A stretch of 64,000 bases of DNA, taken from assembly GCF_026571515.1 (NCBI RefSeq), contig NW_026859122.1:124001-188000 (forward strand), read 5' to 3'. Below, in pieces: positions 3,001 through 19,065 of this stretch. The DNA comes from Ruditapes philippinarum. Its lineage: Eukaryota. The number at the start of each line of letters is the position of its first letter. The stretch's first letter is position 1. The position numbers were made by a program, and so were the translations under genes. Below the pieces are notes generated by a model. The model saw nothing but the letters and a program-made list of their open reading frames with translations. It was not told where the DNA came from and searched no databases.

Positions 3001-5551
3001 TTGACGCCATTTTTTGAAGGACGCACGACAGACGCAGAGTGATGACAAAAGCTCACTGACACCCTTGAGCACTTTGTGCTCAGGTGAGCTAATAAAACAA
3101 TTCATCTATCAAAATTAATTTCTCAACATGCATTTTAAATGTAAAATTTTCTCATTAGGTGTTGACTCAATAATACCATCAAATTACCATTGTTTCAAAA
3201 GAACAAGCAAACAAGCACTTCTGATCTTAGAAATAAGCTAAGTTTTGCACTTATAATATTTTAACATCAAAGAAGGAACATACGTGTTACATTTCCTGGG
3301 CAGACTGTACCCCTCAAGACCCGGCTTGACAGCGATGTTGTTTACAACATTACGACAACTACGGCACTGGATAGACAGATATGTTGCCTTCGATCTGATG
3401 GCAGATGCAGCAATGACTATCCCAGGAATTTTAACCAGCTTTGCCATTTGCTCCGACTGAAAATAAGAAGCTAAATCTACAAACATTCTAATGATATCAT
3501 ACTTGATCCATATATCAAATTATGTCTATTATGTATCATATAGTACCTATTAACTGTTTCAAATCTGAAAACAAAATTAATTAATTTCTTTAAAAACAAA
3601 TCAGTATAACTTACTATCTTAAGTCCATCTAATTATCACCATAATATAGACAATAATTTATGTATTCCTACATAGATCTGATTGCACTAACCTTGAGTGC
3701 TCGTATATTACAGGCATTTTCTTTTGAAGTAAGCATTATTTGTATATCCTGAACATCCTCGTCTCCTTCTGGGCGGGGCTTCGTTATTTCATCTGCAATT
3801 TCCTTGGCTGCATCTTCAAACTAGACAAATAAAAGAACATTTTAATGTTGGGTTTAACGTGGCACCAACACAGTAGTGGTTGTATGGTTAATTTTTTGCT
3901 ATGAAGAGGCCTTGAGTAGAAACACTGCCATTTTGTAAGCTTCCTGTCATAAAAGAATTCAGTGCCTCTGGTTAGGGGTAAGTGGTTTGAAGTCAAAGAC
4001 ATTTACCACTCGGCAATGGACGTTCCTCACATGCAATAATTGTCATACCTTTATAAATAAGTATCAAGAAACTAAACAGGAATGATCTTGACAGCTTGGT
4101 CATAATATTGATTCTTAAATATCATCATTTCAATGATTTAAATGTTGAAATAAACACATAATAGGAGGCGACAAATTCATTTCTAAACATACAAGTCAAT
4201 TCATCTTCCAGCAATTTTTTTCTTTCAATTTTTGTCCTTCATTGTTTGAATTTTTTTATAAAAGCAAGATATGTTGTGTTAAGAGCAATTACTATCAATG
4301 CCCAATTATTTATAAATGAACATAGCGATGAAAAAAAATACTGCTTCCAGGAGAATGCCCCTTTTATTACAAAATTTTATGTATTAGAACGTATTGCCAC
4401 AATAATTAAAATTTTATGTCGATATATATATTTCATCTGATTTCTGTGACAGTCCCGGACATTATGGCATGTATGTAAAAGGTTAATGTGTAATGAAAGC
4501 AAAATTATACCAGAGGTAGATGCTCTGTGGGTAGTTTATACAACTTTTCAGCAAGAGTTTCATCAAAGCTGGCTACATCCTCGACATCTACTTCTAGAAA
4601 ATACTCTCCAAGATTATAATGGCGTTTTAGTTCATCTCTGAAATACAATTAAGTATATATTTTGTATGTTTTTTGTTTGTTTTGGGTTTCACGTCACATC
4701 AACACAGTATCGGTCATATCGCGGCATTTCATCTTTACTGGTGGAGGAAGACCTCAGATGCCCTTCCTTGCATTATTTCAGGCATGAACGGGCACCTGAG
4801 TAGAACCACCGACATTATGTGAGCTAGCTGGATAGCTTCCTCACATGAAAGAATCCAAAGTCCCTGTCGGGATTCGAACCCACAGCGGTGAGGGGCAAGT
4901 GGTTTGAAGTCAACGACCTTAACCACTCGGCCTATTTCGTATGTAAATAGGGATAACATACTTATATTCTTAATTTATAATTAAATTTTGCCAGATCAGT
5001 GATCAGTAACCGGAGAGGTTTGGGTTGAAGAGGCGAAATGTAGCTGGCCAGACTTTTTGTCTATATCTCTTTCTTTTGACCTATCCAATTTCTTCTAACT
5101 TTCTTGACCTAGCACCACCCGTCGCGTTAAAATCAAGTGTGATTTCGCCGACGTACGATGTAGTTTGTAAAAAATCACGGCGGGTAGTCGGTCACAAAGG
5201 GTATTCGATCAAAAAACTTTTTTGCCCTGAAATGCCTATGCCTTACATAGAAATTATACTAGGAAATTGCGGCCAAACCAGACCATTTAAGTGACATGTA
5301 CTTTATAAAAGTAACTTATGAACAGATGAATTGTGTCTATCATGCTCATTTTCTTTTCTTTCTTTCAAATCAGTATGCCAAAAATTATGTCACCTGTAAC
5401 GATATGAGAAGTTTCCTTCATGAAATTGTCGTATGAAGTCTTTAAATCTTTTCTTTACTTGTGTCCTGTTTATTTGATCTTCATTATTTTGGTCTTCTGA
5501 ACCAAAGTTATCGCTGAAAAATATTCCTGGGTCATCAAAGCCAGTGTCCAT
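1..5551 (-). CDS. MCM5: DNA replication licensing factor MCM5, 5' portion (exons 5394-5551, 4511-4637, 3692-3820, 3284-3456, 1-54; continues beyond the window start)
   Basis: Spliced translation with GT-AG junctions and consistent phases: [20 protein letters not shown]...[17 protein letters not shown]|[43 protein letters not shown]|[30 protein letters not shown]...IRALK|[34 protein letters not shown]...[13 protein letters not shown]|[17 protein letters not shown]. This matches the MCM5 N-terminal and zinc-finger region. Confidence 0.97.
226..3092 (+). mobile_element. Helentron-associated interspersed element (HINE-like) with internal ~140-bp tandem repeats, interrupted by nested insertions
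   Basis: 5' ACAAGAGGGCCATGATGGCCCT hairpin followed by GCTCACCTG; 3' hairpin TGAGCACTTTGTGCTCA followed by the inverted subterminal CAGGTGAGC; repeated CCCCAGGGCTTTTATTTGAACAAACTTG units. Confidence 0.7.
1197..2436. mobile_element. Non-autonomous DNA transposon with 13-bp TIR and 5-bp TSD (hAT5-like)
   Basis: TIR CAGGGTTGCCAGC...GCTGGCAACCCTG; TATTT duplicated at 1192-1196 and 2437-2441; subterminal TTCCCTGAC repeats; internal inverted repeat at ~1812-2055. Confidence 0.85.
3845..4025 (-). mobile_element. Degenerate, internally deleted copy of the same SINE
   Basis: Shares GGGGTAAGTGGTTTGAAGTCAA...ACCACTCGGC and GGGTTTAACGTGGCACCAACACAGTA with the 4671-4932 copy. Confidence 0.7.
4671..4932 (-). 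mobile_element. tRNA-derived SINE (V-SINE/RUDI-like), near full length
   Basis: Minus strand head GGCCGAGTGGTTAAGG (A box)...GGGTTCGAATCCCG (B box), body ending GAGGTCTTCCTCCACCAGTAAAG and an AAAC-type tail. Further copies occur in the window. Confidence 0.85.
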
Positions 5552-5589
5552 CTTTCTTTTTTGTTTGTTTGTTCACGTGGTGTACTAAC

Positions 5590-5612
5590 GGCGGGAAATC
5601 TTTCGCGGGAAG
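5590..5612. promoter_or_regulatory. Tandem E2F-type sites in the MCM5 promoter (probable bidirectional promoter)
   Basis: GGCGGGAAA at 5590-5598 (TTTCCCGCC on minus) and TTTCGCGGGAAG at 5601-5612, about 40-60 bp upstream of the MCM5 ATG, in a locally CpG-rich patch. MCM genes are established E2F targets. Confidence 0.75.
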
Positions 5613-6420
5613 GAAATCGCTATGTGCTCTTCACGATGAAGGTAACCGGTGTTTATAAACAAAAGTTGCTAAGTCGATATTGACATATTGACAGGTTAAA
5701 ATTTTATCATCCTTTCGTTGTATTTGCTGCATTTAATAAGAAAGCACGATTTTACTTGTAAATATCTCTATTTTATATATTGTTCTTAAAAAATTGGGTC
5801 TGGTTTCCAAGCTAATATTTTAACAAAAAGTGTTTTATCAAAAATTCGTGTTTTCGACCCAAAATGTTTCGACCCAAAGAAATTAACCTAAACTTAACGA
5901 TCGTAACTCTTTAAATAGGAGGGGAGGGTGAGGGCTACACCATCAACTTTCTTTTAAATAAAGCCTCTGTGGTTAGTGAAAATGCTCACAAATCCTGAAC
6001 CTTAGGTTTTTTATGTTTGGACACAAGTTCCCGGTATCGGTCCAATACCGAATTGTAACTTCGTAAATTACTGTTATATACTATTCTTAAAATACCAGTA
6101 CTGGATTTGATACTTTTGTTTTTTTGTAAAAAAAAATAGAAATAGTCTATATGTCGAAAAATTAGAAGATTTTCAAATAAAAGCAATCCAAGAACACGTA
6201 AAACAATCTATGTACTCTTATTATCATGCGGCCAGTATGGCCTTCTTGGCAAAGTTGGAGTTTGCGGTGCGGGCGATATGTTATATAAGTATTTTGCTGC
6301 TCATGTTCAAGACAATGTGACTTTCCAAGGGACCTTTAAAAAAAGGTCACATATGACAGGGCGTCTCTTAATTAATACAGTCGCAAAGAAAATCAAAATT
6401 TTAGAACAATCTATATTAAA

Positions 6421-6831
6421 CCATACACCGATAAACACTTTCCCCAACTAGCAGACGACAGGCTATTCTTTTCAGTAGGTTTTCGAGGAAAGATAACCGG
6501 TTGCGTATCTCAATATATAAATCGTATGTAAAATGGGCTGACATATGGTAGGTTTAACAGTTAATTTAAATACTTTGGTGTCAAAAGATATGTAAAATTA
6601 TATACTGTGACAAAGCTTAGATCCCAAGCTTTCCATTGATGTAATAATTTTTAAAATCGGACATTTAATCACAACAAACAAGCGGTTTAAAAATGGCTTA
6701 ATTTGTATTGTCTTAGCGTATGAGATACCAATTTTACTCGAAGATAAGGGAAACAACTCGTATTTTTTCACTCGATATACCTCGGTTATTTACCTAGTTC
6801 ATATGAAAAGTGTTTATGGGTGTATTGCGAC
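6421..6831. mobile_element. Degenerate MITE with inverted ends, TTAA-flanked
   Basis: TACACCGATAAACACTTT (~6424) is inverted to AAAGTGTTTATGGGTGTA (~6808), with TTAA just outside both ends. Confidence 0.55.
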
Positions 6832-7094
6832 TTAACATACATAACTGTGTGAAGGAATAATATGTAACCAATTGCAATTACACATAGGTACTCTTTATGT
6901 ATTTGATGTAAATATAATAAGAATGCCTTTAAAACAAATATAATTATTATATTCATATATAGGTTTTTATAAGAAATTTATTGGGGGAAAAATTAGCACT
7001 TCCATTTTACTTTGACACATTGTGAAAATCAACTGATAAAGTTTGACTCATAGAAATTCTACTGTATTTAGATATGTTATTTTTTAAAGGAGCC

Positions 7095-10000
7095 ATGGAG
7101 GGTGAAACAGCCATAGAAAGATCAATAAGAGAGTTTGTATATACAAAGATACAAGAACAGGTATTCCTAGATGTTTCCAAGAGCAACACAATCACAGTGA
7201 AGCATCGGTCAAAGCATGGATCAACTGCTTTAGCTATGTTTTGGTTGCGGGTATTAAGACATAAGAATAATTATCCGATGCCGAAATTTCCATACAAGCA
7301 ATTGTATGATAAGCATGGCAATGATAAGGTAAAACTTTCTTTGAAACTTTTAAGCCTTTATTTAAATTAGCTCTTTTGAATACAAAGTGTCCATCCACTT
7401 AGCTTAATATGGAAAGCATTGGATTAGTAATACAGGGGGTCGCTTGCTCAATTACAATTGCTCATAGCTGTTTTGTTTTAACTGTCATGATTCATGTGGA
7501 ATTAGTACTCAGTCACTTTTGACAGTCAACTTATGACAAAGAGATATGTTAAAATTGGCGTAAAACCCAGAGAAATTTGTTAACTTAGTTACTTAATATC
7601 ATCCCAAGGCAGATATGAACAAGATATTTTCTGGATATTTCCCAGAGCATATCTCCTATATGCATATCTATAATGCCCACATCTCTGTCAAAACCTTTTG
7701 TGACGGGCGTATCTTGCCAAAGTGTTGCCCTTGTTATGTTGTTTAGTAATATTAATACAAAAAAGTGATCGCGATCGCCAGTTTTGGGTTTACCAGTTGT
7801 TGTCAAGTAGTCCTGATACATGATGTTTTATACACTTATAATTAATGCCTACATGTTAAATTCATTTCTTTATTTGTTCTTCTTTCAGTCAGTTTCAGCC
7901 CTAATATGTACATGTATTGTCGTTTGTACTGTAACTATTATAAGTTAATGTTAAATGATTATATTTGCAGGTAATATTGAAAGTTGACAGTGTTACCCTT
8001 ACAACATTTATGAGCACAGGTACTTTGATGATTCAAGGACATTTTGTTCTGGAATGGTTTATAAACACATTTCCTAGTATACTGTCAGCATATGATGCTC
8101 CAATCAAAGATCCACAGCGTCTGAGTACATGTTATTCCCAGTATACTGAAAGTTGGAAACAGTTGATGGACGATGATACACTGAAGAAAGGTATGCTGAT
8201 TACAATTTTGATTACATTATAATTTGATATAATGCTGTCAGAAATATAACTTTTGTTTTAGTACCAGTTTATATATAATATGTAAGAAAGTGAAACTGTG
8301 TTCAAGTCCAGAGGTATCAGCAGCTGAGTAATTTATAACAGAGAGGAAGCTGTCCAGCTATGGACTACATATGTCTACTGGAATATAATTGTACCTTCCT
8401 GATCAAGTCCCATAACTCAAGCAGGGTTTTTGTCAAATTATTTCCCTTTTTGAGCTTTTTGAATTTCTGGTTAAGGGTCTGCAGGGAAGTTCTACATGAT
8501 ACTACTTAAGCTATTTAATAGAAATTTAACAAATGTTTCAGGATCATAACTGAAGGACACAGACCAAGATCTTTTATAAATAGCATGGCCTTTTCTGTCT
8601 TTTCTCTGAATTATCCCCCTTCCTTGGCTCATAAATAGTGAAATATAGGTAAAATGTTAAGTAAAGATATCTTTTAAAGAGCAGAAAGTTAAAAGGTTCC
8701 AAAAATTACCAGAATAAAGAATGGTGAGTTGATTTTTTTTAAAGCATCAGAAGAAAAAGAAGTACGAGAGAGAGAAGATAATGCTATTAAAGTCGCTGAT
8801 GATTTAGATACAGTTCTGGATACAGTTAACACAGAGGTGGCAAAGTTTGATATTGAAAATACTACAGTTACAGAGACAGGTATATTTAATACAATGTTTT
8901 ATTGCAATCTTACGTATTGTAAATTCTTTTTAGTAAAATGTGTTAAAAGAAAGATTTTATTTTAAAATGGTTGTTTGAATATAAGCGAACTTTAGCTACA
9001 ATGTATATTTTCCAAATTGTATGTACTTCAATATATTTGAAATTATTTGGAATTAGAAATATGTTCTTACAATAATAAGTTCAAGGTCATGTTTAAGGCA
9101 AACCTTGAGCTTAATTTAAAGTGTATAAAGCTAGTTCTCATGAAATATTATTTTAAAATTAATCATTAGTAAAATTATATTGTTCAGTAATCTTATGTTC
9201 CATTCTTGAAAGAGTTGTAACATAGAATGTCTCTGTAATTTAACATACATTTTATTGAAGTAAAACAGAATAAAATGTGGCAGAACAAAATATTTTTCTG
9301 CTATTTTAAAACGGGTTTTATCCATTTAGCAATGATTTTGCAATTTAAAGTGACATTATGCCTATCCAATGGTATATAGTGAGTGAACAGGTGAATATCA
9401 AAATAAGTTTTCATTTTGCCATAAATACTTTTAATTAACTTCCCATAAACAATAAATTATGCACTTACATAAGTAAAATTACTGTAAAATTAGAATTTAC
9501 CTATAACGCTCAGTTTATAAAAAGAGTGGGGCAGTCTTTTTATATTTTAGGCAGATTTATAATTTTATCCTGAACGTTTTCCAATATCAACTGTTGGTCA
9601 AACACCATTTTAACAGTCAATCTTTTGAAATATAAAGTCAATTCAGCTAAATTTGACTAGGAAAATATGAGCATAATGTCACTTTAAGATTAGAAAAAAT
9701 AAGGCAATTTACTACCATATCTATTTCATACAAACATCTTGGAAGTACTTTTTTTTAAATTGAAAGTTTTGCAGCAAATATAAAGCTTTAGACACTTTAA
9801 ATCTGCATGCTTCCAGGAAATAGAATTTCTGGCAATTTTATTTTTCCAGAATTTAAGTATTATTCAAAATGATTTTTTTATTACATATTGGAAAACGCTA
9901 TACTATTTATAAGTTCTAACTACATGTACATGTATATAGATAAAATAACATTTTCTGCTGGTTTAAATTACTACTTATGTTTTATTTATTTCCTGGTTCA

Positions 10001-11949
10001 TTGGGTGCTGTACTTTTCATTTTCTTTCTACTCTGTAATACCTTAAATTCTTTTTGAGCCTCAGACACTGATTTAACTTGTCCTTTAACATCTATGGCAT
10101 CAGGGTTACCATAATAAAAACTTGTTTAAATGTATCCCTTTTGCTGGCAATAAACACAAAAATGTTGTCAATATATATAGTTATTGTAATTCTATGGTAA
10201 CAGGAAAGGAAGGAAGGTGGTACCAAACAGTGTTACACTTTTACACAGAACTTTTGTATAAATGTAGATAAAAGAAAACCAGTTTGATTAGTTTTATATT
10301 TTAGACTGATTGTCAGATGATTTAATACAATTCCTGGGACACAGTCAAAAGTCTTTCCAAAACTTTTGTCCCATCTGAAAAATTCATTTTAGGATTTTCG
10401 TCTGTGAATGCTATTTTCATTTACTATGCTTACTTTGTCAACTAGTGAACATACAGAATGTATAAGAATATTGTTGTAAATTTACTTGTTGCTATAGAAA
10501 CATCTACATTGAGGGAGAGGTTGAAGATAGCAGAAGATTCCATGGCCGACCAGTTGGCAACTGAGCTTAAACTTATCTCTCTAGATGTAGTATGTAGTCC
10601 TTCTTTTTTGTTGTGTAAATTTATGTGGCTTTTTTTATCTTAAAAATGAATATTATATAGTATGTTTAATGTAACTGTAGATGTATGTTCGAAACTTTGT
10701 TTTAACATAGTTCTTTAACTGTAAGCTACAGTATAATATTGTCACCAAATGACTGAAGCATTTTAGAGGGTACATCAAACAACAAGAACTATAAGTCTGA
10801 CTCACCTTCCTTTTACCAATGATGTTGACATTATTATTTTACAGTATTATTCTAACATAACATCCATGTTGTTTCTGTTTATTGAAGAAGCATACAGCAC
10901 CAATTTAGTTCTTTCCCTTTCTTTAAAACTATTCACACTAACACAGAGCACTTTTTGAAGTTCTTTCCCTTTCTTTAAAATTATTCATACAAGTTTTTTT
11001 GTTTTGAAATAATTAATGTGCTTAGGGTGTGTATCATTGTTACATTGCTTAGAAAAAGAGAATATATGCTTGTGCACAAAAACTTTCATTGAGTGAATGA
11101 TACTTTTACATTGTATCTTGCAATAATCTACCCTTTCTTGAAGTTGGAGAGTAATAATAATAATAAAGCCTTTATTTAAAGAGGCAACATAGTAAGGCAC
11201 TTTTGATGTCAAGTTAATTGATGCTCAAAATAGGTTTCTGTATTGCATGATACAGTTCTGCTTGTAGCAGCGCTATTGAAATAGTCTTATAACAAAGTTA
11301 AAGTCTTTAAACAGTCTTTTTATTTCATTACCTTTTTTTCTAAACCAAAGATTTATGATATTATATAACATTTCTCTAATAAGACAGTTTATATTTACAG
11401 TGGTCAGGAGATACATTAACGGCACAGCTTGATAATCTACGCACCGGCAGTGTACGGGATGGTTCTACATTTATCTACACACTCTGGAAATCTGTACTAC
11501 ACCACTGGTTCAGTGATCCTGACCGTAAAGTTTACATTGTTACGCCATTTCTCGATTCCTCCCGACTTGTTGACGTCTGCAACATCATCCTTGAGCATCG
11601 TCTTGAGGCTAACCTTGACGCGTTTTATGTGCGTCAGAAATGTGACCATAATAGGGATATATTTGAAGTGAAGCAAAATGCATTAGAAAAGTATGACGTC
11701 AAGGACCAGGTTTTTATAGAATACAAAATATTCAACAATATTATATATCCACTGAAAAGGTTTCATGCAAAATTTATTGCTTGTATAAAAGGAAACGAAG
11801 CAGAAGTGCTGATCACGAGTGCCAACTTTCATGGCGACCATTTTGAATATAGCAACATGGACAGTGTACAGTTTCAGACGATGTCAGACGTAGAATTTAT
11901 CTCAAGGTTTCTGGCACCAATCAATGCTTCAGTATTAGAAAAGAAATAA
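7095..11949 (+). CDS. Uncharacterised 409-aa protein: N-terminal TBP-like domain, acidic helical linker, C-terminal single-HKD PLD-superfamily nuclease-like domain (exons 7095-7328, 7971-8190, 8745-8879, 10498-10589, 11401-11949)
   Basis: gccATGG start context and five exons with GT-AG junctions whose phases (0,1,1,0) join to 1230 nt with no stop. The last exon carries KVYIVTPFLD...RFHAKFIACIKGNEAEVLITSANFHGDHFEYSNMD (HxK + SxN + distal acidic residue). The exon 3 acceptor could alternatively be 8751 in the same frame. Confidence 0.85.
9349..9683. mobile_element. Kolobok-like MITE (TTAA TSD, AG termini)
   Basis: TTAA-AGTGACATTATGC ... GCATAATGTCACT-TTAA. Confidence 0.75.
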
Positions 11950-13971
11950 GGGAACACTGACATATCTAAATACATATGACTCTGCTAGATTATGTAACTT
12001 AACATGCATCATAGATTTAGATATGATTGTAGGGAATTATATGTTGGAAGTTTGAGTTACCGATAATATTATTGAATTGTTTTAGTATATAGGTATGAGG
12101 TAGATGCTATAATAACAGTACTTTTTAGGCATTTGAACTATACTGAAAAATATTCCATTCTAATAAATCTGTATTATCTATGAAACACTGTTGAGACATT
12201 CAAATTTTAAAAAAATATATATACCGGTATATATTTGGAGATGCAGTGAAAGGAAAGATGATATGCAAAATGGAGACATTTTTCAGAGTGATCAGGAAAC
12301 TAATTTTTATGTCTGTGTTTTTATTAATTTTTCTTTGTTAACTAGTTGTGATTTGGTTTTGCAACTTATAAGATCAGATAAGAAAGAAGGGACAGATTGC
12401 TTTGATTGTTTATATATTGTTGTAAGTTTAGCTTTTTAAGTTAGTGCATTTTAGAATAGATTCTTGCCTGTGATATATCACTTTACCATAAATGTTATTT
12501 TTTAGATTTTCTTTATATACACATTGTTTACTTTTTTAACATGGTTTTATGCTAGTTTTATATGTACATGTTAGAGGAGATTTTTATGTGTACACTTTGA
12601 ATGAAGTACAATATCATTATTAATTTTGTTTATCTATGTTACATTGTCATTAACATGTGATCTATTTAAGTATTTTTTAATTGACTGTGATACGAAATGA
12701 AAAGAGTTAAGATTTTATGTTAATGAATGCAAAGGAAATTTTTGTAAAGATTTTGGTTGACTATTTTGAAAGGAATTTTTCATAACCACATTGTATTGTT
12801 GATATACATGTATGGGTTATCCTTGTTTCATATGATAATTTTTTATTGTCTGTTGACCCCTTTCTATCTACAGCAATTAAACTGCTTTATTAAAAAAGTT
12901 CATAAGTATGTATTATATATACAAAAGCTAGAATTCCATTTTATATATAAAATCATTGTACTCCTACAAAGTTTGAAAGAAATGGTATTTTTTTTCCAAG
13001 ATAAGGGTATATTTTGCATTTATTCTCGATGTGCCTGTATTGGCAGCATTGAAAATTTTGTCACTCATTTTACAGTATTAACACTCTTTATTTAGCTTTC
13101 TAGTTTTAACATATTTTATTGCATTAAATACATGTTTACAAACATATTATACAAATAATGAGTATATATCAAAATACAAATGGGTTGGGCAACAAGTTCT
13201 TACAACATTAGATTTAGCCCTTCTTTTTGCTTTTGTGATATTAATATGTTTGTTGGTCATCATTATCTTCAGTTGATTTATACAACGTCTTGTCCTGTCG
13301 ACAATATGGATTATGATCAAACTTGCATGAATAATCCCCAAGGTGGCCCTCTACAAATGATAAAATGGTTCAAGTCTGATTCACAAGTAGAAATAAGACT
13401 ATAAAACTGAAATTAAAAAAAAAAACGTCACAAAAACTACAAGTACAATGCCCAGAGTTTAGATATTTGGCTCATAGAATTTTATAATACCCTGAGGACC
13501 TCTACAACAGATATATGGACCATGCCCCTGGGATCAAAATATCGACTTGTTTTATTAGTTTACATAGACTCGTAAACATGTTTTAAAAGACCTCACCTCT
13601 GAAACTACAGTGCTCAGAGCATTGATACTTGGCATGAAGCATCGATTTGTGGCATGAAACATCGATTTGTTGTTGTATAAAAAGTTTTTTTTACAAGTAT
13701 TGATAATGCCACTGTCAAAACTACTTTATTTTTACCTGTTTGGAAACACATTTTAATGTTAGGGAAACTAAATGTCTAGAGATTAGATATTTGGTATGTA
13801 GCATTTTGTCAAGGGAAATTAAAAAAGTCACGCTGTTGGGGTCAAAAATAACGCACCAAATGTGATCTGTTTGTTTCTTTCTGCAGTGCAGATTTTTTAA
13901 CAATGCATGTTAGTTGAGCGATGTAAAGCCATCATGGCATTCTTTTTAGTGAAATTTTGTAATGTGTTTTT

Positions 13972-14969
13972 TATTATAGGGTTAACGCACGTTTTTCCGT
14001 GTTATAACGTCTGCAGAGTCCCGAGGAACGGTTGGTGCCCGAGCCCGGTAGGGCGAGGGCTCCAACAGTTCCGAGGGACTCTGCAGACTTTATAACACGA
14101 AATAAACGTGCGTTGACGCTATTATAGCATAAAATTTTCAAACAGATTCGTGATGTATAGTTTATACAAAACACAATTACATTAAAGTCTTGTGCTTGGA
14201 CGGTATTTATCCAATTCTATGTTTTACGTATGCGTTTCATTTTTCCGGACCAACAACTTGGAAAATTCTCGGAACCGAACGAAATTTTGAATTTTAAATG
14301 ATTTAACAAAGCTTGGCCTTTGGAGATTTATTATCTCAAGAAAAAAACGTTACATTACTCTACCCTCTACCCAAGACAAAACATGACCCTCAGAAATTCT
14401 TAGAATGATTTCAGATTGACGGTAGAAAAAAGATCAGTGACATCAGAATCGGTTTTTTTTTTAAACAAACAAGTTTATAAAAAAATCAGGCACTAAGCAT
14501 TATTCTCTCAAAGAAATATAAAGAGCATTTATCAACATTAACATAAATAAAAAACATTTTCTCATATTAATTTTGTGTTATCTAGTTGTGTAAGTTAATC
14601 GGAGTGTTAAACTGAATGACAGGTAGATTAGAACTACTGTATTTGTTTACATTGACAACTGTCCGTTTCTTAGAAAGGGCGACAACCAAGATTAGCACCG
14701 ATGTCTATACGCCGTTTTTCCGGCATAGTTACTTAAATATGCGACTGAGGCCCTCGAATTAAATAAATTTCAATATAACAAGAGCGCATGACTCTTCGGC
14801 AAACAGGCCAAATCGTCATTTTTTGTTTGTTTGTTTACTGGGCCCTGTATGTATTGCGCATAGGTGAAACCGGGCTATAACAAGAGCGCGTGACTATGTT
14901 AACACATGGTTTTGGTCCCGTTATAACATGGGCAAAAGAGGGAAAAATAGCCGATTTTATGCTATAATA
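13972..14969. mobile_element. Non-autonomous element with a long terminal hairpin and an internal/terminal inverted repeat (Crypton-like, tentative)
   Basis: ~147-bp GC-rich imperfect palindrome at 13976-14122, then TATTATAGCATAAAAT (14120-14135), which is inverted at 14954-14969. Confidence 0.55.
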
Positions 14970-16422
14970 TTGTTTATTCTATTGTTCATACACTAGTTGT
15001 TGATTGATATACATGTATTGGAAAGTAGTAAAAGATTTTAAAACACTTTTATGAATTATGTTATTTGTTATTGATGACACAATCATACACAGGTAGTTTA
15101 CAGTATCTGATATGGTGTATACACCTACCTTGTACATTAATCACATAGGGAATTTGTTGTGTGTGTAGAAAATAATTCATCGTCCTGAGACTAATCAGTT
15201 GTATACCAGTGAAGGTCATCATGCAAACCAAACTGTTTCACACACCATTATATAGCACTACCCAAGGCCTATATCTTGCACAGATTTTTACAAAATTATG
15301 GTCGTATGTGAACTAAAATATTGTTGCCCTGGGACCTGAAATGATCTCTTGTCCCCGAGTCGTCAGCAAAATTTGTTGGGACGGCACTCTGGAATTACAG
15401 AAAATAAATTTATTTTTTAATTTGAGACGTTTCAGAAGAAATTGGTTGTGTAAACTGAAACAAATACGTTCTTTAAAGGTTGAAACACTTTGACTTGTAG
15501 TTTAACTGTAAATAACTGCCATGCACTTATATTTTCTAGGCAACGATCTCAACTTGTTTTTGTAAAATAATTATATATTTAGTAAGAATAGATATGAAAA
15601 ATGTCTTACAGAAAAAAGTCGAAATCAGGCCACCATTCGTACTTAAAAAAACAAAAAAAACAACAACAAAAAACACACTTGTCGGAAGTGTTTCACTTTG
15701 CGCCGGTCTTCCAACATCATATAAGTTGTTAGCGACATACATTAAGCATAGAAAAGCTAGACAGTTGATATCATTTAATTCGCGACACACATCGTATAAT
15801 ATTTAGTGACATATGTTGAAAATACTTATTTACCATTAAAAATTATTTGCGTAGGCAAGTATCATAATTTAGCTTTATCTTACACAAAATAAGGATGGTT
15901 ACCACTTATAAAGCTCATAAAATAAATTCATGTACAAGATCGATATTGATTTTCAATTTCAATACAAATATTTGCCCAGGATATAGGTCATTTGATAAGT
16001 GGACAGTCAAGTACAACATATTATAATACCTATCATTATAAAATTGTCAAGTTTCACGACGTATCAAAACGGAATTTACTTTTTCTGCCTGACAACAATA
16101 TTATTAAAAGGTACCCTTTTATACTTAATTGTGGAAATACTTATTTTAATTAAAAAAATCATTTAATGAAAATAACCTCATATTCTTATACAATTAAACG
16201 AAAATTTCTCGAGTGTTTTAGAACCACGGAATCCGAGGAATACAAATTAATTATCTATATGGCTTTATGTGGATTGATATACATTGGGCAAATTTTTCGG
16301 TAGGAAATTTCAAATGTTGATAAAAGCATTCAAAAAAGTTGCATTTGGATATCACCATAAAATATTTCTTGAACAAAATGTAGATCGAGATTTAAGTGAT
16401 TTAGTATGAACATCTATCTATT

Positions 16423-16503
16423 ATAATAATAATAATAACAATAATAACAATAATAATAATAATAAATAATAATGATGATGATAATGATGATGATAATAAT
16501 AAT
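16423..16503. repeat. (AAT/AAC/GAT)n microsatellite
   Basis: Direct reading of the sequence. Confidence 0.9.
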
Positions 16504-16767
16504 GTGTTTTAGAGCAATTTATTATCTGCTATATAAAGATATGCTATAGCCCTACAACATCTTTTTAAAACTACTAAATACAATAAAAAATAATAACTAA
16601 CTGTATTACAAACCTTCCATCATGGACAATTTCACTTTAACTAAGGCAATACCAGTCGTTAAAATTTAATATAAAAAGGAAAATCAATAATTTTTGAGAT
16701 TAAGATATATAAACAACAAGTATAAAACTGCAAACTATTCAAATATGTATAAACTGGTGCCTTTTAG

Positions 16768-17861
16768 ATGGCAGAGAGTGGCAGTGAAGGATTTGAAACC
16801 CTGGATGGTATAGGTGGAGATATAGACGTTGTGAGTATTTCAAAGTACATTTTGATTGCGAGAGTGTAACAGTTGACTCCAGAGTTAGAATTTAAACTAA
16901 CTTGGTAGAGGTTGACTTTCATGTCAAATATCTTAGCTATAGCCTTTATTGGTTAAGCGATGGTATTTAAAATTTTTACAATATACATATTAGGAAAACC
17001 GATAATCCATAGGAGAAGGGTCAATTTACCCCAGTCCTATAATTTGAATAAACTTTGTAATGGTCCAATAGACAATGTTTCATGTCCAATACGTAAGCTT
17101 TGGCAGTTATAGTTCATAAAATATTAGCCAAAAAAGGAGTTTTATTCAAACAATGGTAAAATCAATATATTTATACATTGAGAGCATCGCAACTGCTTTT
17201 TGATTGGATATCTTTAAAGTTAAATAATATATGTATACTCGTATTTCATGTCATAAGCACATAAGTTATCATATACTAGTCTATATACATCCCAGTACGA
17301 TAAATTAACCTTTATTTTCAGTGGGATAAACGTACATTAAAAGAAAAGCTTGGAGACGTTTCTGATGGTGGGGTGTTTCGTGGAAAAGATTTTATCTACC
17401 CGCTCTGGAAGACGTTGCTTAATAAATGGTTGGCGTACAAAACCTCAAAAGTATACCTTGTAACACCCTTTCTTGACGAGCAACGCATGCAAGAGGTCTG
17501 CAGGATAGCTTTGTTGAATGAAGCAGACGATAGAATCGCAAGCTTTTATGTGAGAGAAAAGTGCAATTTCAGTAAATCAATCTCAGATCTACAAGAAACT
17601 GTTACAGGTGAAATAAAGTCAGACGACAAAAGCAAAAAGATGCAGACGCGACTTGAGTCCATATACGAAAAGATTGTGGACCCCGGGAAAACTTTCCATG
17701 CCAAGTTTATGTGTTGTGTCCGTGGAAGCAAAGCCGAAGTTTTCATAACGAGCGCAAATTTTCATGGTTCTCACTTCGATTGTAATAATTTGGATACCGT
17801 TCAGTATATTACAACTACAAAAAAGAATTTCGAAGAAAGATTTTTACAGCCCTTGACATGA
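16768..17861 (+). CDS. Stand-alone single-HKD PLD-superfamily nuclease-like protein, ~200 aa, tandem paralogue of the upstream gene (exons 16768-16830, 17322-17861)
   Basis: MAESGSEGFETLDGIGGDIDV|WDKRTLKEKLG...FIYPLWKTLLNKW...KVYLVTPFLD...FYVREKC...TFHAKFMCCVRGSKAEVFITSANFHGSHFDCNNLDTVQY...RFLQPLT*. Donor GTT/gtgagt and acceptor tttcag/TGG, with the same DV|W phase-0 intron as the paralogue. Additional upstream coding exons cannot be excluded. Confidence 0.85.
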
Positions 17862-18550
17862 TTTTTTTCTACTCCACCTCCAAGTCATTCTCTTGGCAAC
17901 ACTTTCAGCATAAATCAATCGGTTAGCGTGCGCCCGAGCAAAATAAACGTCAGTTCCAGTTTAAAGCCGAATATTAGTAAAAAAAGTTTTAAGTTTTTTC
18001 CCATTCTACTGTTTTAAGACGGTATCACATTTCTCTTGTTGGTATCGGTTGTCGGTTTGTTTTATCGCATTTATAAGTTTGGCAGACGGTAGAGGTTAGT
18101 AATCCCATCGTTCGTCTGCAACTTATCAGTTTCTTTACAATCATAATTATCTACACACATTTTATCTTTTGCGTTTTTCCCCTATTTATATCCCAAATTT
18201 TACTTTTTATATCTTATGTTTTATTTTTACTTTTTATCTTACATTTTATTTTTACTTTTCTATCACAGCTTTTTACAACTGATGACAGCAAATCTATATA
18301 AACTAATATATTGTTTTTATCTATTTAAGTGTATTTTTGTATACTGTTTACAAATTGTATTAAATTATATATACATACAGGTTTATGTTTTATCGTTTAA
18401 TATTTGGAAAAAAAATGTGGGAAAGGATTTTCTTCTGTAACATTGTTAAAGGGCTGTAACGATTGATCTGATATTCACGATTCCAGCTTTGGCGTTTCAG
18501 ATATTTGATAGTCCCAAGTTCACTCAATCGTGATATTCACATCTATATCA

Positions 18551-19065
18551 ACAAGAGGACCATGGATCGCTCACCTGAGATACGTTGCTAGAAAATGGTC
18601 CAAATGTTAATCAGTAATGACGTCATTTTTTACCATGCTGCATAATTTTTAACAAGCTTATGGATGCCTGCTAAGCTCTTGACATTGTTATTTCACAGAA
18701 GACTTTATTTCTTTATTAAATGTGATTTACTATATAAGTCTATATAAACTCAATGAACTCCGGGACAGGAACCAGTTTTGACTCCATGGGCATGATTTAA
18801 ATAACTTTTGTAGAGAACCACAAGGTAATACATGGGCATTGTAATTTCTGAAAAGAAGATTTTTAAAGATTTTATTTTATATCCTGCAAACTACTTAAGC
18901 ATCAGACTGGAACCATTTATAGAACTTGGAGAAAACCACCTAAAAATCGTTCATGTAAAGTTTGGTCAAAATCCATCAAGCGGTTTAAAAACAAATTGTG
19001 GACAACGATGAAAGACAGATACACTGCCATTGCAAAACCTGACTTTGTGCGTAAGTGAGGTTATA
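18551..19065 (+). mobile_element. Degenerate HINE-like element of the same family as 226-3092
   Basis: ACAAGAGGACCATGGATCGCTCACCTGAG start and a decayed ACTTTGTGC..AAGTGAG end. Confidence 0.6.

Follow-up and report, generated by a model that had tools for sequence, protein, structure and literature searches.

The DNA analysed here, hereafter the window, is a stretch of 64,000 nucleotides (nt) from the clam Ruditapes philippinarum, i.e., positions 124,001-188,000 of the forward strand of contig NW_026859122.1 (assembly GCF_026571515.1). Two neighbouring genes in it, gene 1 and gene 2, end in exons that encode a phospholipase D (PLD)-like domain. The best explanation, to which a probability of roughly 0.55 was given, is that these are two separate, intact, and transcribed genes of an unnamed, deeply divergent HKD family, whose products act as homodimeric, metal-independent phosphodiesterases with nucleic acid as the likeliest substrate. 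It is built on the gene structures, contig evidence for the splicing of gene 2, the fold with its intact motif, the range of the family, and its prokaryotic branch, all of which are shown, whereas dimerisation (by model), catalysis, the substrate, and any biological role are inferred. The family is a new, unnamed branch within the known PLD (HKD) superfamily.

Active site and predicted fold

The catalytic domains of Nuc (Salmonella), NucT, and BfiI are single-HKD, homodimeric, metal-independent PLD nucleases. Like them, the clam proteins carry one HxK...N...acid set per chain of approximately 150-180 amino acids (aa). The set was assigned as H122, K124, N142, and D154 in the terminal exon of gene 1 (copy 1), and as H126, K128, N146, and D158 in that of gene 2 (copy 2). 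In this order, the plus-strand codons are located at 11764-11766, 11770-11772, 11824-11826, and 11860-11862 in gene 1, and at 17697-17699, 17703-17705, 17757-17759, and 17793-17795 in gene 2. Relative to the FHAKF His, the TSANF Asn is at +20 and the NxDxVQ Asp at +32 in both copies, which is the spacing reported in an initial annotation of this DNA. The His-to-Asn distance, with the acid about 11-12 residues further, fits the numbering of the BfiI active site, which the same annotation gave as H105, K107, N125, and E136, and of which only His105 was confirmed.

An AlphaFold2 model of the copy 1 domain was built on a 41-sequence family alignment and showed a mean predicted local distance difference test score (pLDDT) of 96.5 and a predicted template modelling score (pTM) of 0.92. 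In Foldseek and VIA-align comparison of the model, the matches were almost all members of the PLD superfamily. The highest Z score was that of FAM83A (14.0, root-mean-square deviation 2.6 over 144 residues), followed by SauUSI (12.9), FAM83B (12.3), PssA (11.9), Nuc (11.5), NucT (11.1), Zucchini (10.6), PLD3 (10.5), BfiI (10.5), and TDP1 (about 10). When a full-length orthologue model was scanned against 48,161 representative chains independently of Foldseek, the order was the same. Among viral structures, a phage NucT-like nuclease was matched best (E 2.4e-6, TM 0.59). The predicted model and its matches agree with the PLD/Nuc fold that had been proposed for these proteins.

A homodimer model reached a score of 0.60, and the best of three controls 0.00. 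Of 30 proteins whose structures were solved as pairs, 21 came up to that mark, and of 23 solved as single chains, none did. Between runs, at least 98% of the contacts agreed, and pLDDT was at least 87. The modelled interface comprises residues 119-125, 138-141, and 150-155, with H122 in contact with D154 of the partner chain. BfiI has one active site, located at its dimer interface, in which the two His105 residues take different roles, and the predicted symmetric clam dimer places its motif residues in the arrangement described for that enzyme (PMC2853115). The model suggests that the proteins dimerise and, together with the fold, the intact motif, and the neighbouring or fused domains, it points to catalysis on a nucleic-acid substrate.

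In the proposed mechanism, two chains would pair via the motif-bearing face and form one symmetric active site. One His would attack the phosphodiester to give a phospho-histidine intermediate, and the other would protonate the leaving group, i.e., metal-independent chemistry of the Nuc/BfiI/Zucchini type. The gene 2 product (200 aa) would function as an enzyme by itself, in dimeric form. In the gene 1 product (409 aa), the N-terminal domain and the long helical linker would probably target or regulate the same chemistry. Nucleic acid is favoured as the substrate because of the zf-CCHC knuckles of amphioxus relatives, the weak zinc-ribbon-like matches, and the neighbouring type I restriction endonuclease (REase) and Mrr-type genes of prokaryotic relatives. 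The weak matches to ZacB, DrmC, NgoFVII, and Tyr-DNA_phospho and the phage NucT-like viral match favour it as well.

Gene structures and transcription

The window is AT-rich animal DNA with a G+C content of approximately 31%. Both terminal exons are on the plus strand, follow a canonical ...cag acceptor, and have Trp as the first codon. The terminal exon of gene 1 (11401-11949, 182 aa plus stop) holds a whole single-HKD PLD-fold domain, and that of gene 2 (17322-17861, 179 aa plus stop) likewise encodes the PLD-fold domain.

By mapping of the Mercenaria orthologue P0187, gene 1 is predicted to consist of five coding exons on the plus strand, with all introns GT-AG. The exon lengths sum to 1230 nt, which makes 409 codons and the stop, and P0187 likewise has 409 aa. 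The first coding exon (7095-7328; 78 aa, ATG at 7095, donor AAG/gtaaaa, the slash marking the boundary) encodes the first half of an N-terminal alpha/beta domain, and its identity in tblastn of orthologues was 80% to P0187, 71% to P0005, and 46% to P0004. The second (7971-8190; acceptor ttgcag/GTA, donor AAAG/gtatgc) encodes the rest of this domain, which includes the TGTLMIQG motif, and the beginning of the linker, with 80% identity to P0187. The third (8745-8879; AG/GT boundaries in frame) encodes an acidic helical linker, and the fourth (10498-10589; acceptor tatag/AA, donor GTA/gtatgt) the linker end (...SLDV, phase 0). These two showed 65% identity each to P0187, at residues 151-196 and 197-227, respectively. 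The layout of the protein is an N-terminal alpha/beta domain, then a helical linker, and then the PLD-like domain.

Gene 2, also on the plus strand, consists of a 5' untranslated region (UTR) exon ending at 16110, a first coding exon at 16768-16830 with its ATG at 16768, and the terminal exon, giving 200 aa. The non-coding exon was placed at 15901-16110, the 5' boundary being approximate. The first coding exon encodes 21 aa (MAESGSEGFETLDGIGGDIDV; acceptor ttttag/ATG, donor GTT/gtgagt) and was matched by tblastn of Mercenaria P0002 (76%, E 4e-6). The product is essentially the PLD-like domain alone behind a 21-aa leader. It corresponds to NCBI LOC132755341, "uncharacterized protein" (P0180), also of 200 aa, in which the terminal exon is 100% identical and the first 21 residues are the same. 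No similarity between genes 1 and 2 was detected by tblastx upstream of the last exon. Two intact spliced homologous genes had been annotated initially. The models are intact and the terminal exons are paralogous, but gene 2 is no copy of the whole gene 1 and has only the domain and a leader.

Transcripts were checked on 11901-17900 using Logan contigs of two runs (X1 and X2), each from a different study. The RNA nature of both runs is the tool's guess, and it is plausible because the contigs show an intron-free pattern. Joints from 16108/16110 to 16766/16768 and from 16830 to 17322, both GT..AG, were found in X1 and X2, the former linking the non-coding exon to 16768. Spliced transcripts of gene 2, with both introns removed, thus exist in contigs of two runs, in line with the spliced structure first described. 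No contig depth was found at 16901-17300, inside the second intron, or at 15101-15900, and depth was low at 15901-16100. Low contig depth (about 3-10) was also seen at 16301-16767 within the first intron (16111-16767), and points to unspliced RNA or to an alternative 5' end.

Downstream of gene 1, contig pieces of X1 and X2 covered most of 11901-13976 at a depth of about 12-58, except for a repeat-inflated bin at 13101-13300, and ended at a repeat starting at 13976. The overlapping pieces in both runs mark a probable long 3'UTR at 11950-13975 on the plus strand. This transcribed stretch of about 2 kb past the gene 1 stop is probably a 3'UTR, or else separate transcription.

Sequence profiles and comparison with known PLD families

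The full-length products were represented in the searches by the public proteins P0180 (gene 2), P0187, and P0005, and the window exons were searched singly. By sequence, the proteins stand outside every characterised animal PLD family, as the initial annotation had claimed, i.e., no significant Pfam, NCBIfam, or PDB match was obtained for the domain. The PDB was searched with phmmer and with the family profile, and nothing was found. The recurrent weak profile matches were PLDc_2, NgoFVII, ZacB, and DrmC. Among the 41 members, ZacB was matched in 12 (best E 1.1e-6), PLDc_2 weakly in 10 (best E 8.3e-5), the DrmC models in up to 7, and RE_NgoFVII in 5. The DrmC equivalog of NCBIfam, NF038319, gave 14.0 and 13.4 bits against a cut-off of 133. 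Weak matches to Tyr-DNA_phospho were found in two of the members (E 0.017 or weaker) and in P0033. The FAM83/DUF1669 Pfam model matched none of the 41 even at E 1. Because the profiles are below cut-off and the fold is that of PLD, the domain is considered a remote superfamily member, recognisable by fold and not by current profiles. Membership of FAM83, Zucchini, TDP1, or DrmC was rejected, since each fails a defining sequence test.

Nuc, NucT, and BfiI show no significant sequence match to the clam family, and the identity in structural alignments was 10-14%. Unlike them, the clam family has its own elements, i.e., LWKxLLxxW, VYxVTPFLD, and a C-terminal FxxRFLxP, and is found in animals in spliced genes, with gene 1 adding the N-terminal domain and the helical linker. 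In FAM83 (DUF1669 pseudo-PLD; 4urj, 5lzk, 5qhm), the domain is N-terminal, whereas the clam domain is C-terminal and its catalytic set is complete. The Z lead of FAM83A over SauUSI is about one unit, which amounts to a tie. Zucchini/PLD6 (MitoPLD) is unlike the clam proteins in motif flavour, the clam reading being FHAKF...TSANF, and in the clam neither a sequence-level match to it nor an N-terminal membrane anchor was evident. Its structural similarity to the clam domain is below that of FAM83, SauUSI, and Nuc. TDP1 has two HKN motifs in one chain, whereas the clam proteins have one per chain.

A bacterial-defence flavour had been proposed for the domains, and this stands in part. The only recurrent weak profile matches belong to the group of the SauUSI N-terminal domain, DISARM DrmC, Azaca ZacB, NgoFVII, and NgoAVII, and in a defence island the prokaryotic kin have a type I REase and a PDC-S02/Mrr_cat gene as neighbours. 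On the other side, the matches are far under the cut-offs (about 100 of the 586 ZacB positions were aligned), the clam genes have no fused or neighbouring helicase or nucleoside triphosphatase (NTPase) partner, and the nearest structure, tied with SauUSI, is that of an animal protein. Azaca, a PLD-type nuclease-NTPase system, cleaves DNA in vitro (bioRxiv 10.1101/2025.07.10.664194).

Distribution of the family and prokaryotic relatives

The family profile was searched against 1.84 billion representatives. The family comprised 149 proteins at E up to 1e-3, including 36 at E up to 1e-30. Members were found in bivalves (Ruditapes, Mercenaria, Mactra, Mya, Dreissena, Sinanodonta, Potamilus, and Argopecten), in gastropods (Haliotis, Biomphalaria, and Gigantopelta), and in Lingula (brachiopod), Owenia (annelid), Tubulanus (nemertean), amphioxus, and Ptychodera (hemichordate). 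All named members are "uncharacterized" or "hypothetical", except for one automatic label, "otolith matrix protein OMM-64-like". The description as an uncharacterised invertebrate family is thus borne out by the names of the relatives, and no mention of the LOC identifiers was found in the literature.

The long form has 370-410 aa, with a confidently predicted N-terminal alpha/beta domain at residues 1-121, long helices at 133-208, and the PLD domain at 217-390. In the amphioxus relatives, zf-CCHC knuckles (above the Pfam cut-off) are carried instead of the long-form N-terminal domain. This N-terminal domain, i.e., gene 1 exons 1-2 and P0005 residues 1-121, is more conserved across phyla than the catalytic residues. 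Its invariant residues include G43, S44, W51, Y68, G96, and G102, and a VLQHxNNYP motif was seen. No structural relative was identified for the P0005 model of residues 1-121. A similar "tLLiQG" N-terminal domain, joined to a PLD domain with H, K, and N intact, was observed in a distinct unnamed eukaryotic clade (P0109, P0126, P0135, and P0136).

The prokaryotic branch consists of two metagenomic clusters, P0146 and P0147 (413-437 aa). They were aligned to the animal family by hhalign with 98.1% probability (E 9e-14) over 154 columns, including family-specific elements outside the HKD core. Their N-terminal zinc-ribbon-like matches are weak and all below the Pfam cut-offs. In a scan with a single protein, the contigs L005 and L006 were recognized as one element carrying the prokaryotic PLD gene. 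Genes for a type I restriction R subunit and a PDC-S02/Mrr_cat protein, together with two open reading frames (ORFs) of unknown kind, lie upstream of this gene, and an integrase-like gene, TniQ, and TniB (Tn7-like) lie downstream. The two ORFs (L005 4304-5714; 183 and 279 aa), without family assignment, are tightly packed on the same strand between the PDC-S02/Mrr_cat and PLD genes, and may form one operon with the latter. The link to a defence island is thin support, because it is a single genomic context. No prokaryotic members were found in GTDB species representatives, IMG/VR, or metagenomes by scans with the alignment and patterns, and as judged from these searches the prokaryotic branch of the family is rare.

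A viral or transposon origin of the clam genes was rejected. The best viral match is only the phage NucT-like nuclease, no transposon genes flank the clam genes, and the repeat between them is unrelated.

Paralogy and age of the duplication

The terminal exons are paralogues, with 41% identity over 180 aa (BLASTP, E 2e-51). FIYxLWK, KVYxVTPFLD, FYVRxKC, FHAKF, AEVxITSANFHGxHF, NxDxVQ, and RFLxP are common to both, so that every shared motif listed in the initial annotation was recovered. In a six-frame search of the whole 1.4-Gb assembly, only a third paralogue was found, on contig C8068, giving three family copies in this genome. This paralogue (G000:C8068:294530-298018; L003: 507-956 and 1450-2007) has two coding exons and about 318 aa, and its relative P0003 is 85% identical. 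Its N-terminal domain is a version of its own, and its PLD domain reads S-T-N and TTAH where others read H-A-K and SAN. These substitutions have presumably abolished catalysis.

Protein identity to the Mercenaria orthologues is 81-90%. Within gene 1, conservation against Mercenaria is highest in the PLD exon (90%, the other exons 65-80%). In the last exon of gene 2, the contigs differ from the reference at eight positions, i.e., four synonymous and four conservative non-synonymous differences. These signs are indirect, that of the eight differences being weak but consistent, and both copies may be under constraint.

A recent tandem duplication was rejected, since Mercenaria orthologues exist for both genes. 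As far as these orthologues indicate, the duplication is older than the Ruditapes-Mercenaria split, in line with its description as old. In the best tree, gene 2 is placed outside a 45-row clade holding gene 1, the other long forms, and the C8068 paralogue (99% support in the Shimodaira-Hasegawa-like approximate likelihood ratio test). In the approximately unbiased test, however, gene 1 and gene 2 as one clade or as sister lineages were not rejected (p 0.347). On this account the duplication is dated only to before the Ruditapes-Mercenaria split.

Opposing evidence and alternative explanations

Several observations weigh against active nucleases. All known PLD-family profiles stay below cut-off, and the PLDc_2 model of Pfam gave 16.3 bits for copy 2, against a cut-off of 27, and no match for copy 1. 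The nearest solved structure, FAM83A, is a non-catalytic PLD-like domain. H, K, and N are kept together in 65 of 132 aligned representatives, and the other 67 are without at least one of them (at the acid position, 103 of the 132 rows have D or E). In the 45-row clade, the set was lost in 36 rows. Because about half of the representatives, chiefly long forms with the N-terminal domain, have lost the catalytic residues, the PLD fold has a catalysis-free use in the family. The dimer score may stem from solved dimers of Nuc, BfiI, and Zucchini that the model had learned. The isoelectric points of the two domains, 6.0 and 8.7, are not markedly basic and are uninformative. In raw RNA-seq reads of a third run, of which about 4% was read, the depth on the last exon of gene 2 was low, i.e., 1-3.

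The main rival follows from this evidence, i.e., the proteins would resemble FAM83 proteins in being PLD-like but non-catalytic, with a role as scaffolds or ligand binders, and the HKN set would be an ancestral feature retained without use in hydrolysis. Such use must hold for many members of the family. It is less likely for the two window genes because all four residues are kept in both and likewise in their Mercenaria orthologues. HKN is also kept in 33 of the 34 rows of the remaining grade, which contains gene 2 and other short, domain-only proteins. The failure of the FAM83/DUF1669 model to match any member speaks against a FAM83 relationship, and the true nucleases SauUSI and Nuc are within about 1-3 Z units of FAM83. 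For the window genes, a scaffold role is considered unlikely.

A role as housekeeping phosphodiesterases of DNA metabolism, e.g., TDP1-like removers of end adducts at replication, in place of immune or defence nucleases, is rather unlikely. Gene 1 lies about 1.5 kb from a divergent MCM5 gene, with an E2F consensus at 5591-5598, copies are few (three in the clam assembly), and the weak Tyr-DNA_phospho matches in two members and P0033 would fit such a role. However, these matches are far under cut-off, and the two HKN motifs per chain of TDP1 differ from the single clam motif. The E2F site is at the MCM5 end, and the count of such sites in the window is no higher than by chance. Catalytic residues were lost repeatedly and the family disappeared from many animal lineages, which is unusual for a core repair enzyme.

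Lipid phosphodiesterases or transferases, i.e., enzymes of the phospholipase D, cardiolipin synthase, or phosphatidylserine synthase type, share the superfamily, and PssA and PLD3 are among the structural matches. This reading is very unlikely. The lipid PLDs among the structural matches are single chains with two HKD motifs, whereas the clam proteins have one, and no hydrophobic anchor is evident in the leaders. The fused or adjacent modules of the relatives are linked to nucleic acids, i.e., zf-CCHC, weak zinc-ribbon-like matches, and restriction-modification neighbours.

A reading of the second terminal exon as an alternative last exon belonging to gene 1 is hardly credible and was rejected: both terminal exons are phase 0 with Trp first after exons ending in ...DV, on the same strand 5.4 kb apart, but the contig joints of two runs (mapped from 11901) give gene 2 its own ATG exon, the NCBI models have 200 aa in Ruditapes and 201 aa in Mercenaria, and transcribed sequence continues for about 2 kb past the gene 1 stop codon.

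Neighbouring features

N-terminal exons of an MCM5 orthologue were found at 5390-5551 and 4505-4648 on the minus strand, divergent from gene 1. The ATG of gene 1 is placed head to head with the MCM5 start. The single E2F consensus (TTTCCCGC) is 40 bp upstream of the MCM5 ATG. Rfam search of 5000-19000 gave no matches.

An interspersed repeat of 994 bp is located between the genes at 13976-14969. On a first look, 1629 candidates were counted in the assembly, and 40 scored full-length copies were 95-98% identical. The first 150 bases or so match their own reverse strand at about 82%. RNA-seq depth over the repeat was raised 10- to 100-fold, and many reads overran both ends. The repeat has the appearance of a non-autonomous element that is young and transcribed.

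Biological meaning

To our knowledge, single-HKD PLD nucleases in animals are essentially limited to Zucchini/PLD6. The clam genes would represent a second animal single-HKD family, unrecognisable by sequence, widespread in marine invertebrates, and present in at least six invertebrate phyla, without a Pfam model, a name, or a paper. Its points of note are an intact Nuc-like half-site beside an unexplained N-terminal domain, repeated conversion to pseudo-enzymes, and rare prokaryotic kin in a restriction and defence island.

It is a tentative and rather doubtful extension that the family is an ancient bilaterian module of nucleic-acid defence, with common ancestry with a prokaryotic defence-island PLD nuclease. 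In such a module, the long form would couple a nucleic-acid-sensing N-terminal domain to the PLD effector via a coiled-coil linker, the short form would be a free effector, and the catalytically dead paralogues would be regulators or decoys. If this were true, a PLD nuclease would join those immune modules whose conservation extends from bacteria to animals.

If nuclease activity is present, the proteins would be candidates for antiviral or anti-transposon activity in invertebrates and for an immune link from bacteria to animals. If it is absent, the family would provide a natural series from active to dead PLD domains, parallel to FAM83. In either case, a profile from the family alignment A2 would allow annotators to name such genes.

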